Shown here in pieces: positions 37,571 to 45,113 of a stretch of DNA of 64,000 nucleotides; position 1 is the first letter of the stretch, and every line of letters starts with the position of its first letter. Origin of the DNA: Mytilus trossulus. Its lineage: Eukaryota. The DNA is taken from contig NC_086373.1 in NCBI RefSeq assembly GCF_036588685.1, forward strand, positions 90,954,001-91,018,000. Reading direction: 5' to 3'. The notes under the pieces are model-generated. The model had not been told where the DNA came from. It ran no database searches and worked only from the letters and a program-made list of their open reading frames with translations. Made by a program: the position numbers and the translations under genes.

Positions 37571-38853
37571 TTACATTTATTTGTAGGATCCTTTACTATA
37601 AATAATTTAGCTGATCTGTAAGAATAACATCTGCATGCCTTATATATCATGTACTATAGTACGGCGCTATATTAAAACTGACGTGGAAATGTAACACCCG
37701 ACCACCGAAAACTTATTTTTTATGAAGCCCAGTTGGTCGTGTGGTCTAGCGCTACGGTTACAGTGCAGGCGATTTGATGTCACGGTATCTCAGTAGCATG
37801 GGTTCGAATCCCGGCGAGGGAAGAACCAGATCTAACATTGTTGGGTTGATGTTTAGACGAGTTGTATATATATATATATATATATATATAAGTACGTCTG
37901 AGTCAATGACAACTCTACAACAGATGTATCCATCGGATCACCAGCAATGATGATGATACATGACTGTGTACATTATGTATATACAACTCGTCTAAACATC
38001 AACCCAACAATGTTAGATCTGTAAATTTGCTTTCACAAATTTTTGGCTCTTCCCTCGCCAGGATTTGAACCCATGTTACTGTGATATCGTGACACCAAAT
38101 CGCCTACACTGTATCCGATGCGCTAGACCACTCGACCACCTTGGCTTCCCAATAATAAAGCTTTCGGTGGCTGAGTGTTACCTATATATATATATATATA
38201 TAAGGTAACATATGGCCACCGAAAGCTCTTTTTTGAGAGCCCAGGTGGTCGTGTGGTCTAGCGGGACGGCTGCAGTGCAGGCGATTTGGTGTCACGATAT
38301 CACAGTAGCATGGGTTCGAATCCCGGCGAGGGAAGAACCAAAAATTTGCGAAAGCAAATTTACAGATCTAACATTGTTGGGTTGATGTTTAGACGAGTTG
38401 TATATACATTATGTACACAGCCATGTATCAATATCATTGGTGGCGATCCGATGGATACATCTGTTGTAGGGTTGTCACTGACTCAGACGTACTTATGAAT
38501 ATAATTATTTTCTGTGACTGTATCTTACATTAATTTGTAGGATCCTTTACTATAGATAATTTAGCTGATCTGTAACAATAACATCTTCATGCCTTATATA
38601 TCATGTACTGTAGTACGCCGCTAGATTAAAACTGACGTGGAAAGGTAACATATGGCCACCGAAAGCTCTTTTTTGAGAGCCCAGGTGGTCGTGTGGTCTA
38701 GCGGGACGGCTGCAGTGCAGGCGATTTGGTGTCACGATATCACAGTAGCATGGGTTCGAATCCCGGCGAGGGAAGAACCAAAAATTTGCGAAAGCAAATT
38801 TACAGATCTAACATTGTTGATGTTTAGACGAGTTGTATATAATATATATATAT
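37571..38853. repeat. Cluster of 440-bp tRNA-headed (Pol III A/B box) repeats in +,-,+,+ orientation, joined by (TA)n
   Basis: A-box-like tggtcgtgtggtctagcg and B-box gggttcgaatccc at ~37727(+), ~38147(-), 38239(+) and 38679(+). The last two are exactly 440 bp apart. (TA)n runs at ~37865-37890, 38184-38202 and ~38843-38853. Confidence 0.85.
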
Positions 38854-39407
38854 AGTGAGAGAGGGATAGTTAATATAGTATAAAATATTTAATTTTGCGC
38901 AACATGCGTGCAAAATAAAATTGTTATATATCAATTATGAAACATGACACAACGCACTATATTGTCATGATTGTATTATCTCCATTATTTTCATATTAGA
39001 AAAGGAAACAAGCCAAAAACTTACTGCATCGATCGTCAGAAAAAATAATAAAATGTGGCCTGGTGTCATGGAATCTTACAAAAAAACTTTTTATAACGTT
39101 TCTTTAATTTAGACAGCTGACGATAACAACTTAAAAAAACGGAATCTAACGATGTTTATAAAGTTCAATACTTGGCAGTTAGCTATATCATCAAAAGGAA
39201 TTTCAAAAAGACCAATCCTATCCACCTATGTTCAATTGTGCATGAATGAATTTGAACCTTAGTTCCGATTTAATCATATATATGACCAGGTATGTCAAAA
39301 ATTATGTCAATGCTGAAGAACTGACTCCTGAGCCTATTTATTCTCATTTCAAGAGAATTGCTTTAATTACAAGTACTTGTACTATTTTCATTCTTTTTCA
39401 TTCAGAG

Positions 39408-41952
39408 ATGGAATTAAGCAGAAAAGAAAATGTCAGGAAGTACAATGAAGTTTTTGCTGCTGTCTTGGAATCTGACATTGAAATTCTTAAGTCAATTGTT
39501 GAAGAAGAGGGTGTGTCTGTATTAGAGAAGAAGACAAAAGAAGGTTGGACAACGTTGCATGTTGCAGTCATATTTTCAAAAGATTGTGTTGTTAATTTTC
39601 TCCTTGACCATGGTTGTAATGTTCATGTACAAGACACAGATTTAAAAACACCACTTCACTGGGCAGCTTTTAATAATGTGCCGTACAAAATTTTCGAAAA
39701 AATAGTGCATGTGGCTTCAAAAACGAAAGGTGCGTTAGACACAAACGACGCTCTTAGAAGAACACCTCTACATTATGTATGCATGAATAATGCAGCTTGC
39801 AACGAAGAAGAAATTATCTCTAATTTTTCTATTGAAATAGTAAAAAAAGTGCACTTATTGCTAAGTTTCGTCGGTGATATCGATTCAATGGACAATGAAG
39901 GTAATACTTCTTTGCATCTATTTTGTTCTAACATCCACAATTGTGTACAATCGCAGATTGTAGATCATAATTTGATTCCAGAGGAACTGAAAGAATATAA
40001 ATCAAAATCTTTATGTGGTTTTATCACAGAAATATTCATAAACAAAAAGGCAAATATTTTCTTGCCAAACGAATATAAAATTACTCCTTTTCATCTGGCT
40101 TGTAAATTTCTCTGCGTTGAAACGATAAATGTAATGTTATATCAACATTCTCTTCCGACTTCATTGATGGACATATGTGATACACCTCCGATGTCAATGG
40201 TGTTCAGTCATGCACCATGTACATGTAAATCTCTTCCAAACAAAAGGCAGCAGTCAGACTGGTCCTACCTCTCTGATCACAAGTCACGATTTGAAGACAG
40301 TCTGCGCCCTGTCTTAAAACATATGAAAATTTATATAAATAATGCCAAACGTGTGACTGGTTCAACAGCCCTGCATCTCGCAGTTTCGGATTTAAAGTGT
40401 TCATCTAACGTTGTAAAGGGTTTATTGGAATATGCTAACGCAAATGTCAATGCAAGAAATTTTTTTGGTAAAACTCCAGTACATTGTTTGATAAAAGGAG
40501 ACATTAGTGCATCTGGTCAGATAAAGAATGTAATGCAAACAAACTGGCAAAATAAAATAGCTTTGTTGTTCAAGCATGGTGCTCACATCGACTGTCAAGA
40601 TATTTTCGGATTTTCTCCTTTACACTATGCTGCATTGTATTGTGACGTAGATTTTCTAACGTGTCTTATCGAAAACAATGCTAATGTGTCTATGCGTAAC
40701 AAACACGGAGCTACACCGTTCCATCTTCTTGCTATTAATACGAGAAAAGAATTAGACCCAGATCTAAACGATTTCTGTACTGCACTTGACATACTATTGA
40801 AAGCTGGTTCTAACATCAATGGTCAAGATTCGTACGGCTCGTCGGCACTACATTACGCAGTATATGGCGGCAACACAACAATTGCGTTAATTTTTTTGGA
40901 AAAAGGAATAGATGATGGTTTAAAAGATGTCGAAGGAATGACTGCTTCAGATCTCTGTTTTATTGTTAATCGTGTTGAATTCAAAAACTTCTTAGTTGAG
41001 GGAGTTAAACTTTTTGACGATAAACTAGACATGTTTTTAGAAACCGTTCATATCAATGATGTGTCAAAGTGGTTATCTTGTAACATTTCAAAAATTACAC
41101 TTAGTGATGAAGAAATCCTTCATTTACTGCATCCTTCTCAAAATAGCTCTTTATCAAACAAGGTCTCAGACAACATTGTTTTAAGACAACTTCTTGATCT
41201 CATGAAGTCAGTGTTTACTGAGGTGGAACGTCGTGACAACAGATTTAAAGTTTCGATAGAGCTTTCAGGGAGCACTAGAGAGGGTACGAAAGTTGACGCA
41301 CCCGACGAGTTCGATATTCTGTGTTTCTTTGATAATTTCGAAAATCTTTGCGATGTTGAAGAAATCCAGGAATTATACTGTGTACAATGTAGACGAAAAG
41401 AAGATGAACAAAATCAATCATATAATGAGTTCTTTAACGAAAACGGTCTCTTGATGGGTAATCGAATTGCCAAAAAATTCTACCTTCATTTAAAAGAATG
41501 TCTTGGAATACCATCTGTTTGGAAATGTGCTCCTGGATTATCAGAAGATACTGTTGGCTTTGAATTCCCCTCCGCAGAAGACTTTCCGAGTATTCTTTGT
41601 CTACATTTCTTATATACTGATGCAAAGCGTAAAGAGATGCCATTAAGCTGCGATATCGTACCCGTAATACGTCAGAGACATTGGTGGCCATCTTTTGCAA
41701 AACAAGACGGAAGATTAAACACAGTGAATATAATGGAAAATGGTTGTATGATTATGTGTAGACCTAACAAACAGACTATGCTTTCTGGTGAAGTTGTCAC
41801 ATTCCTTACTCGTTTTACAGTGTCAGTTTACTTGGCGGAACTCTGCATAATTCAATCTCTTCCCAAAGCCGTGGTAGATGCCTACAAATTGGCAAAGATT
41901 CTCCTAAAACAGAAACACTTATATCCTCCATTAACGGAAATTACTCAGCAAG
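39408..41952 (+). CDS. Ankyrin-repeat + Mab-21/cGAS-like (cGLR) nucleotidyltransferase, main coding exon
   Basis: About 10 ankyrin repeats (GWTTLHVAV, KTPLHWAA, RTPLHYVC, GNTSLHLFC, ITPFHLAC, GSTALHLAV, GKTPVHCL, GFSPLHYAA, GATPFHLL, GSSALHYAV). These are followed by the NTase motif GSTREGTKVDAPDEFDI (41268-41318), a third acidic residue in SCDIVP (41652) and the Mab-21-type helix AYKLAKILL. A pyrimidine tract and CAG acceptor end at 39405, just before ATG 39408. Donor AG|GTATGT at 41952/41953, phase 1. Confidence 0.93.
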
Positions 41953-42299
41953 GTATGTGAACTAATTTGTTGAAAGATTATGTCATTATTGTCTAAATAA
42001 GATACTATTTTTAGTTATCGTCTAAGTGCATGACACTTTGTATGAGTTATGAAAATTATATTTCAAAGTTCAAAATCTGCTAAGAATAATTCACATTGAT
42101 AAGGTGTTTTTTTTATTATTGTATGTATTTTGACATTTCGATTATTGGTCATTACAAAACATAAAAAATTTAACATATATAACATTGTTGCTGACGTTAA
42201 ATCGTGTTACATTGTATATTATTTTCAAAACGGACTGCTTGTTTACATATTATTCGAATAAACTAAAACGCTAATACATTTTTTTATATATATAAATAG

Positions 42300-42667
42300 A
42301 AATAATCAGTAACGAGGAGCAGGGAATGGACATTTTCTTGTCAGCCTTTCATCCAATGATGGGAGTGTTCAGCAAAAGAAATATGATAACCAGCTATGAA
42401 TTAAAAAATGCTTTGTTTTATGAGCTCGATTTGGAACCTAATATAAAGATTACGGATTGTCTGGATATCAAGACGACCAAAGAATGGGCTGTGAGAATTT
42501 TCAAGCGTGTTCATAGTTTCATATCGAATGGTTGTTTCACACCCTACTTCATGCGAACATTATCCATCAGTTCATCAACATGTGAAAATTCTTTGAAAAA
42601 TATTGAGTGTATGTTTTGTAAAATGATTATAACCATATTGGAAGGTAGTTTGAAAGAAATTGAATGA
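42300..42667 (+). CDS. Terminal coding exon of the ankyrin-cGLR gene (Mab-21 C-terminal helical lobe)
   Basis: Acceptor TAG at 42297-42299. The phase-1 join gives GAA ATA ATC AGT AAC GAG GAG CAG GGA ATG, in frame with ORF 42326-42667. Contains ITSYELKNALFYE (the SYxLK motif of Mab-21/cGLR proteins) and a PYF motif. Confidence 0.88.
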
Positions 42668-42974
42668 TACTGTGAATGTTAAAAGTAATCACGTGAGAGG
42701 TACGTTAATGGCCAAAAGAAAATAATTCGGATAAGGAAGAGGGTTACTATGTTCAAAAGCACCTATGTGGCTCGTTAAATTCGAAAGGAAAAAAAACGGA
42801 AAACATTACTGCCAAATAGATATTAGACATTATTCTGTCAGATTTCAGTTTTGATATATTCTATTTGAATTATGCGCTAATATAGTTTCTTCAGATTATT
42901 ACAAAATTATCAAAAACTTCTTAAATAATCCTCAGTTTAAGATGTTGAAATGTTCCCCCTATTTTGGTTCTTAA

Positions 42975-43565
42975 GGTGGTATGGGAGTCTAAAATAAAAA
43001 TGATAGAATTTGTTCATACTTTGCCAAAATGTAGTATGTATTGATACATTTTCAAAAATATTATAAAAATGATAGGTCACCGCGCATTTTCTCAAGCAAC
43101 AGGTTGTGACAAAATGACAGATTTTGTATGGATTATACAGGAAAAAACACAATTTTGTGAATAGAAACTAAACAAAATGATAGAATTGTAAAATAAATTG
43201 GGAAAAGATAGCTTTCAGACAATGCTTTGAGAATATCAAAAGAAAAGATAGGGTCACCGTACGTTTTTTCCAACTAAAAGACAAAAAAGGAAAATTCCAT
43301 GAATAGTCCTTCAGAAAATGCACTGTATTAGAGTTATCTCCCCTAAAAATGCCAATTTGAAAATATTTAAAAACAACCAAAAATAATCAACGCTTGTAAC
43401 AATATTAATATTTATAAGTTATGTACTTTTAAACTTGGTTCTTTTAAATGAGAATTCACATTAAATATCGACATTCCGCATCAAATTTTGCTAACTTGAT
43501 AGAAAATACGGACCTAAGATTCTCTGTTTTTTACAATCCAAGATGGCGAAGACACCCATACCACC
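42975..43565. mobile_element. Non-autonomous TIR element with TTAA target duplication (Kolobok-type)
   Basis: TTAA|ggtggtatgggagtct … agacacccataccacc|TTAA (one mismatch). Confidence 0.88.
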
Positions 43566-43965
43566 TTAAAGGTTCTACGCCTAATTCATGTACGTCCGTC
43601 ACAAAACATGTTTCGTATTTGATAATATCGCAAACCCGTATTGGTAGTTTATGCAGTATTTGTCTATTTATCGTTCTCCTAACATCAAATGATGAATTGT
43701 ATTCATTTAACTGTTTTATTACTTCAATATCGTACTTCTGGACTATATGTCATTTCCTTCACAGTAAAGTTAATTTTAATTGACTTTATATTGCACACCA
43801 GACATTGGTCTGCATATATGCTGATGATGAAACATTTGATTCATGTAATGTCTTTAAAGTCTTACGATATATAATAAACACGATTGCTATCAATAACTAG
43901 TGCATGTGTCATTGATTAGTATTTTTTTCTTGGTGTTGCTACATTTTATTCGTTTGGTTTCTTTA

Positions 43966-45113
43966 AAAGAGGGACGAAAGATACCAAAGGGACAGTCAAA
44001 CTCATAAATCTAAAACAAACTGACAACGCCATGGCTAAAAATGAAAAGGACAAACAGAAAAACAATAGTACACATGACACAACATAGAAAACTAAAGAAT
44101 GAACAACACGAACCCCACCAAAAACTAGAGGTGATCTCATATGCTCCGGAAGGGTAAGCAGATCCTGCTCCACATGTGGCACCCGTCGTGTTGCTTATGT
44201 AATTACAAATCTGGTAAATAGTCTAATTCGGTAGGTCACATTCATGAAAGGGAAGGAGATTGTAGTTACGACGTAAATTTACGAAGGGATGATTTCAACT
44301 TCACCATTTGAAACTCTTGGTTTAATAGCTTCCTTGTGAGCAGTAACCCTCTATCAAGAAAATTATGATAGGAAATGCAAGCACGGGAATATCGTATCAA
44401 TTGGGAGATATATACCCCGTTTGCAGGTGCTACTGGAATGTTGCTACTTAGAAATGGAAAGTTTACAATTGGAAAGCTGAAATCATCTCTTTTGTCGTAA
44501 AGTTTTGTTTTCAACCGACCCTCATTGTCAATTTCTAGTTGTAAGTAAAGATATGAAGCCGACATAACTGTATCTGTAGTATCCTTTATCTCCAGTTCGA
44601 TGGGATAGCTGCGTTCCACACAGTCACCAAATTTTGAATTGTTTAGTGAAAGAACATCATCTATATAGCGGAAAGTAGAGTTAAAGGATATTGCTAACTT
44701 TTTATCTTTCTTCCTAAGAAGTTCCTGCATGAAGTCAGCCTCATAATAATAAAGAAACAAGTCGGCAAGTAGAGGGGAAAATTTTGTACCCATTGGAATG
44801 CCGACAGTCTGTTGAAAAACACGTCCTCCGAACGTAACAAATATGTTGTCAATCAAGAAATCAAGCATCTTTATAATATCAGTTGCAGAGAATTTTTTGT
44901 TTGGATCAGAGTGATTCTTTACAAAGAAGCATTTATCCCTCCCTAAGACAAGATACTTGTATCTACGTTGACCATTCTTTTTTATAAAGCAAAGTAATAC
45001 CAACTCTTTCAATTTGTCTTTTAGTTTGGAATGCGGAATACTTGTGTAAAGAGTAGAAAAGTCAAATGTTTTGATACTGTTACAAGATGAAAGAGAGTTA
45101 GATTGTATGTACT
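43966..45113 (-). mobile_element. Penelope-like retroelement, 5'-truncated RT fragment with 3' tail
   Basis: Open frame 45113-44266 with IKTFDFSTLYTSIPH, FQQTVGIPMGT, FRYIDDVL and LYDKRDDF motifs. The 3' tail is also found at 34115-34288. Confidence 0.88.

Follow-up and report, generated by a model that had tools for sequence, protein, structure and literature searches.

The window analysed here, a stretch of 64,000 nt from Mytilus trossulus (RefSeq assembly GCF_036588685.1, contig NC_086373.1, nt 90954001 – 91018000 of the forward strand), contains LOC134690351, a gene that carries the label "uncharacterized protein" in RefSeq. It has two coding exons on the + strand (window nt 39408 – 41952 and 42300 – 42667) and specifies a protein of 970 aa, in which an ankyrin-repeat (ANK) array is followed by a nucleotidyltransferase (NTase) domain of the cGAS-like receptor (cGLR) type. 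There is hardly any room for doubt that this is a real, intact and transcribed ANK-cGLR gene. The initial annotation of this DNA had proposed just such an intact fusion of about 970 aa in a mollusc, and both points hold: the fusion is borne out by the RefSeq record (XP_063406389.1), spliced contigs, Pfam ankyrin matches and a fold search, and the mollusc is the mussel M. trossulus.

The observations described below are best explained by a mechanism of three steps, which we favour with moderate confidence. The enzyme domain would make a nucleotide second messenger, probably a cyclic dinucleotide, that is read by a mussel STING; the ankyrin array would gate the enzyme by docking on it and by binding a ligand or partner; and nucleic acid binding in the groove normal for cGAS would not be the trigger. 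The enzymatic activity, its product, STING as the receiver, gating by the array and the nature of the trigger are all inferred. The fusion class itself is not new, having been catalogued in 2023, and LOC134690351 adds a further example to it.

To our knowledge, all cGLRs for which a trigger has been established detect double-stranded nucleic acid with the enzyme domain itself, and a search of the literature found no report of what domain-fused cGLRs sense. In the survey of Li et al. 2023 (PMC9980059), 87% of animal cGLRs are single-domain proteins; the other 13% or so carry extra domains, and some have tetratricopeptide-repeat (TPR) or ankyrin modules, or tandem cGLR domains. An expressed, catalytically complete ANK-cGLR with an acidic enzyme domain, close paralogues and orthologues is a practical entry point and a tractable test case. 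What is gained here lies at the level of the family and introduces no new principle: the clade is wholly fused, mostly acidic, present in at least 20 copies per genome, and found in bivalves and a hydrozoan.

Gene structure and the enzyme domain

The + strand has open reading frames (ORFs) of 904 codons (nt 39246 – 41960) and 113 codons (nt 42326 – 42667) at the positions of the two exons. Exon 1 (nt 39408 – 41952) encodes residues 1 – 848 and the first base of codon 849, and is covered by contigs; exon 2 (nt 42300 – 42667) encodes residues 849 – 970, which form the helical lobe at the C-terminus of the cGLR fold, and ends in TGA. The intron between them (nt 41953 – 42299, + strand, 347 bases, GT..AG) is in phase 1, with the donor CAAG/GTATGT cut between nt 41952 and 41953 and a pyrimidine-rich acceptor between nt 42299 and 42300, after which the frame is restored. 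The RefSeq protein XP_063406389.1 is 100% identical to the exon 1 query and has the same ATG (nt 39408) and the same exon junction, and its tail is likewise identical to the product of exon 2. The exons were searched separately, while full-length analyses used the RefSeq record. The ATG is the first one after a pyrimidine run and an AG, and follows directly on this apparent 3' splice acceptor (nt 39406 – 39407, + strand). Because of the acceptor, and because a contig of run X3 aligns from nt 39408 after 32 letters without a match at its 5' end, a non-coding 5' exon upstream of nt 39408 is implied.

Transcript evidence comes from four small public runs that hold the locus, the contigs of which were aligned to nt 37700 – 43600. 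These runs are RNA by guess only, with depths that are low and uninformative on tissue or induction, and were taken as transcriptome because they contain the form without the intron and leave the unique flanks without cover. Contigs of three runs (X1, X2 and X3, from two studies) skip nt 41953 – 42299 exactly, with GT..AG ends (contig joint 41950>42298, cut +2), and contig depth is zero within the intron as well as over nt 38882 – 39275. Downstream of the stop codon, the 3' untranslated region (UTR) runs from nt 42668 to approximately nt 42990 (+ strand); spliced contigs reach nt 42987 – 42998, and cover beyond about nt 42970 is derived from a repeat. An artefactual annotation or a gene copy in decay has a negligible probability. 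No point in support of either was found, and both are already refuted by the open frame of 970 codons, by contigs of three runs that are spliced at exactly these sites, by orthologues in four other Mytilus species (M. galloprovincialis, M. edulis, M. coruscus and M. californianus) and by an overall ratio of non-synonymous to synonymous substitution rates (dN/dS) of 0.27.

The NTase core (residues 591 – 848; nt 41178 – 41952, + strand) was assigned to the cGAS/cGLR fold by Foldseek, VIA-align and a sequence match to the PDB. In the last search only cGLRs and MAB21L1 were matched, and the best and sole significant match was 8gjy (E 0.002). A full-length AlphaFold2 model was built on alignment A4, one of two alignments of distant relatives at about 20% identity (A3, 62 sequences; A4, 30 sequences). 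It has a mean predicted local distance difference test score (pLDDT) of 81.7 and a predicted template modelling score (pTM) of 0.80, and comprises cap helices, 12 ankyrin helix pairs, a linker, an alpha/beta enzyme domain and a helical lobe, with C-terminal helices at residues 847 – 963. The Foldseek list for the full-length model consists mostly of ankyrin proteins, with the oyster protein Cv-cGLR1 at rank 48, and the enzyme part was for this reason also modelled alone, as the portion encoded by exon 1 and without the 122 residues of exon 2 (pLDDT 87.1, pTM 0.84). With this model the top Foldseek match is Cv-cGLR1 (8gjw, E 6.6e-11), followed by cGAS. The VIA-align Z scores are 17.6 for oyster Cv-cGLR1 (8gjw), 16.6 for a Tribolium cGLR, 16.1 for mouse cGAS, 14.8 for Sp-cGLR1, 14.7 for human MB21D2, 13.5 for MiD49, 11.8 for MAB21L1, about 10 for bacterial CD-NTases and about 9 for OAS. 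The bilobed, cGAS-type architecture typical of cGLRs (Pol-beta-like core, long spine helix and C-terminal helical lobe) is present in the model.

Two of the checks proposed in the initial annotation came out differently. Structure prediction did return a cGAS-fold match (Cv-cGLR1 and mouse cGAS, scores above). Pfam confirmed the ankyrin repeats (E about 1e-40) but not the Mab-21 domain: Mab-21 (PF03281) scores 18.6 bits and, on exon 2, Mab-21_C (PF20266) scores 16.1 bits, each under a cut-off of 24.1. Relatives at about 50% identity do pass the Mab-21 cut-off (36.5 and 44.5 bits), and the sub-threshold scores probably explain why RefSeq left the protein "uncharacterized". Despite them, the predicted cGAS/cGLR fold of the enzyme domain is solid. 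Pfam detected no domains other than ankyrin and Mab-21 in the 970 aa product, and a protein atlas returned generic Mab-21 clusters only, and no structure. A cytosolic location of the protein is assumed throughout.

Within this fold all of the catalytic residues are in place. They were followed through A3 and A4 (see above) and through two further alignments, of 11 close relatives (A1) and of 20 genes of this genome (A2). The activation-loop motif G621-S622 (nt 41268 – 41273, + strand) is invariant in A1, A2 and A4; A3 keeps G621 without exception and S622 with few exceptions. The first two metal-binding acids lie in E634-F635-D636 (nt 41307 – 41315, + strand); D636 is invariant in A1 – A4, as is E634 in A1 and A2, and at least 90% of the sequences in A3 and A4 have E634 too. 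The third catalytic aspartate, in the stretch S-C-D-I-V-P, is D749 (nt 41652 – 41654, + strand), invariant in A1 – A4, just as had been annotated initially. The complete GS-x9-EFD motif claimed at that time is right in its residues, all of which are present, but wrong in its spacing, as the spacer is 11 residues long (residues 621 – 636). The general cGLR pattern [DE]h[DE]h..h[DE]h together with a GS loop can be read as E634-F-D636-I and C-D749-I. From D636 to D749 there are 113 residues (about 110 between motifs), which departs from the X50-90 acid spacing in the pattern of Li et al. (PMC9980059). The long gap is a family-wide insertion and not a defect of LOC134690351, because it measures 108 – 119 residues across the ANK-cGLR genes of this genome.

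Comparison with an 89% identical paralogue of the same genome (see below), the only pair for which dN/dS was computed, gave an overall value of 0.27, the ankyrin array standing at 0.31 and the enzyme core at 0.18. Judged from these sequences, both genes are under purifying selection, the array being somewhat freer. The enzyme domain is predicted, with fairly high confidence, to be catalytically active. The alternative, that the Mab-21 domain is non-catalytic and, like that of MiD49/MiD51 or MAB21L1, serves to bind nucleotides or to interact with proteins, the whole protein being an adaptor, would accommodate the sub-threshold Pfam scores and the unusual catalytic spacing, and MiD49 and MAB21L1 are themselves good structural matches (Z 13.5 and 11.8). 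It is nevertheless unlikely: even at about 20% identity the relatives strictly retain the GS, E, D and D positions, dN/dS is lowest in the enzyme core (0.18), and active cGLRs and cGAS outscore the non-catalytic relatives structurally.

The ankyrin array and its gene family

The ankyrin array occupies residues 1 – 530 (nt 39408 – 40997, + strand) and begins, at its N-terminus, with cap helices; 12 helix-pair repeats follow, interrupted by irregular inserts. Pfam recognises Ank_2, Ank_4, Ank and Ank_5 in it, with E values from 1e-26 to 1e-40. The count of about ten repeats in the initial annotation was too low, since 11 recognisable TPLH-type cores and a capping repeat make up 12 helix pairs in the AlphaFold2 model (residues ~40 – 530). 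The modelled array is a tandem helix-turn-helix solenoid with repeats of about 33 residues, as is usual for ankyrin-repeat proteins, and its Foldseek matches are AnkB, ankyrin-R and designed ankyrin repeat proteins (DARPins), with E about 1e-19 for a DARPin and for ankyrin-B. Between array and spine helix of the enzyme lies an acidic helical linker (residues 531 – 590; nt 40998 – 41177, + strand; isoelectric point (pI) 4.8), modelled as helices at residues 538 – 574 and with low pLDDT over residues 531 – 539.

A non-ankyrin insert separates repeats 6 and 7 (residues ~283 – 305; nt 40254 – 40322). Six of its residues (R294, F295, D297, L299, R300 and P301) are invariant in 11 of 11 subfamily members, and a low-confidence loop (residues 270 – 284) precedes it. 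The insert may be a contact or regulatory motif.

LOC134690351 is one of many such genes. A six-frame search of the M. trossulus genome with the enzyme part found a paralogue of 89% identity (L013, G000:C1:80866500-80874500), located 10 Mb away on the same chromosome, and 21 more matches of 24 – 38% identity, nearly all of them inside open frames of 640 – 1215 codons. Twenty of the matched places were fetched; 19 have a long open frame, and each of these carries ankyrin and Mab-21 domains by Pfam. The genome accordingly holds at least 20 open frames with both domains. All 20 of the open frames from this genome and all 43 of the database relatives tested have ankyrin repeats, and, on this sequence evidence, fusion to an ankyrin array is constant throughout the clade. 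The Mab-21 domain is found with E 0.001 or better in 19 of 20 genes of this genome, and with E ≤0.001 in all but three of the genome and database members together (window protein, 0.002; M. californianus orthologue, 5e-4). The length of the array varies among paralogues, which have about 230 – 700 residues ahead of the enzyme domain.

The 89% identical paralogue has the same splice donor and a matching second exon, and database relatives at about 50% identity all break off at the intron point of LOC134690351, while distant paralogues have the whole enzyme domain in a single open frame. From these alignments, the interruption of the enzyme domain by a phase-1 intron seems specific to the subfamily. 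Elsewhere in the genome, three ANK-cGLR frames of 898 codons each (L022, L023 and L024) lie in tandem about 30 kb apart (G000:C14:7504000-7577000), which suggests a recent local amplification.

An exhaustive profile search returned 226 clusters (at the 50% identity level) with E 0.001 or better. There are at least 300 residues ahead of the enzyme domain in 110 of the 149 cluster representatives in which the start of the domain is covered. A count of ankyrin motifs by regular expression was tried as a proxy for the array and dropped, as it missed arrays that Pfam confirms. The named relatives come from M. galloprovincialis, M. edulis, M. coruscus and M. californianus, the clams Mercenaria and Ruditapes, and the hydrozoan Hydractinia symbiolongicarpus. 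The clam proteins are giants (2287 aa in Mercenaria, 2255 aa in Ruditapes), each with a MYND zinc finger and two matched Mab-21 stretches in addition to long ankyrin arrays; they represent a more complex architecture within the same enzyme clade.

Gating, trigger and genomic surroundings

The enzyme domain of the window protein is acidic, with a pI of 5.5 and a net charge of about -8, and 16 of 19 paralogous enzyme domains have a pI below 6.3. According to Li et al. 2023 (PMC9980059), cGLRs that sense dsDNA or dsRNA have a pI above 8.5, and acidic cGLRs are proposed to answer non-nucleic-acid ligands. The acidic enzyme domain of LOC134690351 is consistent with a non-nucleic-acid trigger, and it is because of this acidity that a nucleic acid in the usual cGAS groove is not the expected trigger. 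As for the output, exons encoding the ligand-binding domain of STING are present in the M. trossulus genome, and for M. galloprovincialis Li et al. (PMC9980059) count 218 cGLRs and 9 STINGs.

Docking of the array (residues 1 – 530) against the enzyme (residues 560 – 970) gave a score of 0.56, with a best control of 0.01, which the tool rates as 'weak support'; in its calibration, passing scores of 0.60 or less were obtained for 5 of 78 solved complexes and for all four of the mismatches that passed. Contact agreement between the docking runs was at least 58%, with a pLDDT of the partner of at least 74. Because of this score and the pTM of 0.80 of the whole chain, a fixed intramolecular arrangement of array and enzyme is hinted at by the models. 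Substitutions among four close sequences were also compared between the canonical ankyrin binding positions (-4, -3, -1, +7 and +8 around each TPLH core) and the rest of the array. No excess was found at the binding positions, of which 19 of 55 are variable against 127 of 475 elsewhere (odds ratio 1.45, p 0.26).

That the array is a sensor or a regulator of its enzyme seems to us an evenly balanced proposition. The main competitor holds that the array is a scaffold or address label, acting in localisation, oligomerisation or recruitment of partners, and that the enzyme recognises a ligand of its own, such as a positively charged molecule in the acidic groove. The acidity of the enzyme domain suits this explanation, as Li et al. 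propose ligands of that kind for acidic stand-alone cGLRs, and the acidic auto-active cGLRs in their study have no ankyrin repeats (PMC9980059). It also agrees with the lack of excess change at the binding positions and with purifying selection on the ankyrin part (dN/dS 0.31). An array that has been kept from bivalves to a hydrozoan while its length varied (~230 – 700 residues) is, however, more typical of a specificity module, and both the docking of the array on the enzyme, weakly supported as it is, and the high pTM of the whole chain speak against a mere label. We regard the scaffold explanation as improbable, though clearly the most serious of the competitors.

The ankyrin domain of RNase L binds 2',5'-oligoadenylate (2-5A), and by analogy the array might bind a small nucleotide signal, the protein then relaying or amplifying a messenger from another cGLR or an OAS-type enzyme. 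Apart from this analogy, the large mussel cGLR repertoire (218 cGLRs and 9 STINGs in M. galloprovincialis, see above) is all that points in this direction. No specific similarity to RNase L was found, the structural matches of the array being generic ankyrin proteins, and a relay of this kind is very improbable.

Against the favoured three-step mechanism stand several of the results. Docking support is weak. There is no sign of an arms race on the ankyrin binding surface, because substitutions are not enriched there. Both Mab-21 profiles score below their cut-offs, the window protein does not follow the X50-90 spacing (see above), and intact catalytic residues are no proof of activity. A literature search for any ANK-cGLR found no functional study, activity, product or ligand. 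The initial annotation had gone further and suggested a protein ligand, with the array activating or autoinhibiting the enzyme; the lack of enrichment and the weak docking lend this no support, and we consider it doubtful that the ligand is specifically a protein.

A broader idea can be put forward only tentatively, namely that the ANK-cGLRs are an old cnidarian and bivalve branch of cGLR immunity, in which the array, in place of the enzyme groove, would sense a protein or other non-nucleic-acid ligand and release or activate the acidic enzyme, giving a nucleotide signal. If this were true, the family would be the cGLR counterpart of sensing by NOD-like receptors (NLRs) based on leucine-rich repeats (LRRs) or ANK, and the diversified copies, of which a mussel genome has roughly 20 or more, would amount to a repertoire of specificities.

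Among the long ORFs of the 64 kb window there is no other convincing gene beside LOC134690351. Upstream of the gene, nt 38650 – 38810 contain a tRNA-like repeat of the short interspersed nuclear element (SINE) type, with box-like segments such as GGTTCGAATCC, and repeat-derived contigs are stacked over nt 37900 – 38880 to a depth in the thousands. A further repeat directly 3' of the UTR (nt 42970 – 43600) is covered by contigs to a very high depth and in many variants. Just downstream of the gene, on the - strand, an open frame of 248 codons (nt 44266 – 45012) with a weak RVT_1 match (E 1.5e-4, below the cut-off) is probably a remnant of a retroelement.

Comparison with known systems

The protein-sensing cGLR class suggested in the initial annotation would not be a newly seen one: ANK-cGLRs, including ones with Mytilus-type accessions, had already been described as a recurrent architecture, with examples from Stylophora pistillata (Li et al. 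2023, bioRxiv 10.1101/2023.02.22.529553; PMC9980059). The same authors suggested protein-protein or protein-ligand roles for these fusions (PMC9980059), and the text of their paper describes no characterised ANK-cGLR. Their Table S2 lists ankyrin-bearing cGLRs with VDI/VDH, CAC5 and CAG22 accessions (e.g. VDI82392.1, CAC5388653.1 and CAG2223019.1; PMC9980059), prefixes which, among the relatives found in the current study, belong to records of M. galloprovincialis, M. coruscus and M. edulis. LOC134690351 belongs to this class, as its array and cGLR domain are joined in one polypeptide, specified by one spliced transcript and recorded as one RefSeq protein; the published members likewise combine an ankyrin array with a cGLR domain whose active site is putatively complete, and some are from the same genus. 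The accessions of the orthologues of LOC134690351 (VDI66391, CAC5409865, CAG2234779 and XP_052095962) are not among the supplement rows listed, which shows neither their inclusion nor their exclusion. In our judgement the M. trossulus gene is later than that survey, because XP_052 and XP_053 accessions are likewise absent from these listed parts of its tables.

The best structural matches of the enzyme domain, Cv-cGLR1 of Crassostrea virginica (8gjw) and Sp-cGLR1 of S. pistillata (8gjy), have the same GS..E.D..D residues. They differ from the window protein, with its enzyme domain of pI 5.5, in lacking an ankyrin array, and share only 15 – 18% identity with it. Vertebrate cGAS shares the fold (Z about 16) and the catalytic residues as well. 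From the net charge of -8 of its enzyme domain, the window protein is not expected to have a basic DNA-binding surface, and it begins with an ankyrin array where cGAS has a disordered basic tail. Its catalytic spacing is about 20 residues longer than in cGAS, the corresponding acids of which we take to be D227 and D319 in the human protein.

RefSeq names the M. californianus orthologue (XP_052095962.1) 'alpha-latrotoxin-Lt1a-like'. Latrotoxins have an N-terminal wing and a helical-bundle domain before their ankyrin array, and a long array is all that the window protein has in common with alpha-latrotoxin; the Foldseek matches to 9go9, 9goa, 7ptx and 7pty align within it. A latrotoxin-like identity was rejected on these grounds, and also because ankyrin and Mab-21 are the only domains seen by Pfam and a cGLR enzyme forms the C-terminus. 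Similarity of the ankyrin repeats produced this misleading name, which is not evidence of a toxin.

A parallel in design is offered by receptors of the STAND/NLR type (STAND: signal transduction ATPases with numerous domains), which carry repeat sensors, LRRs, and ANK, TPR or WD40 repeats in fungal and invertebrate forms. The window protein has no NTPase switch and its output domain is a nucleotidyltransferase; the resemblance is one of analogy and not of whole-protein homology. What the two groups share is a solenoid of variable length placed on a signalling enzyme or switch, together with a large, lineage-specific expansion.

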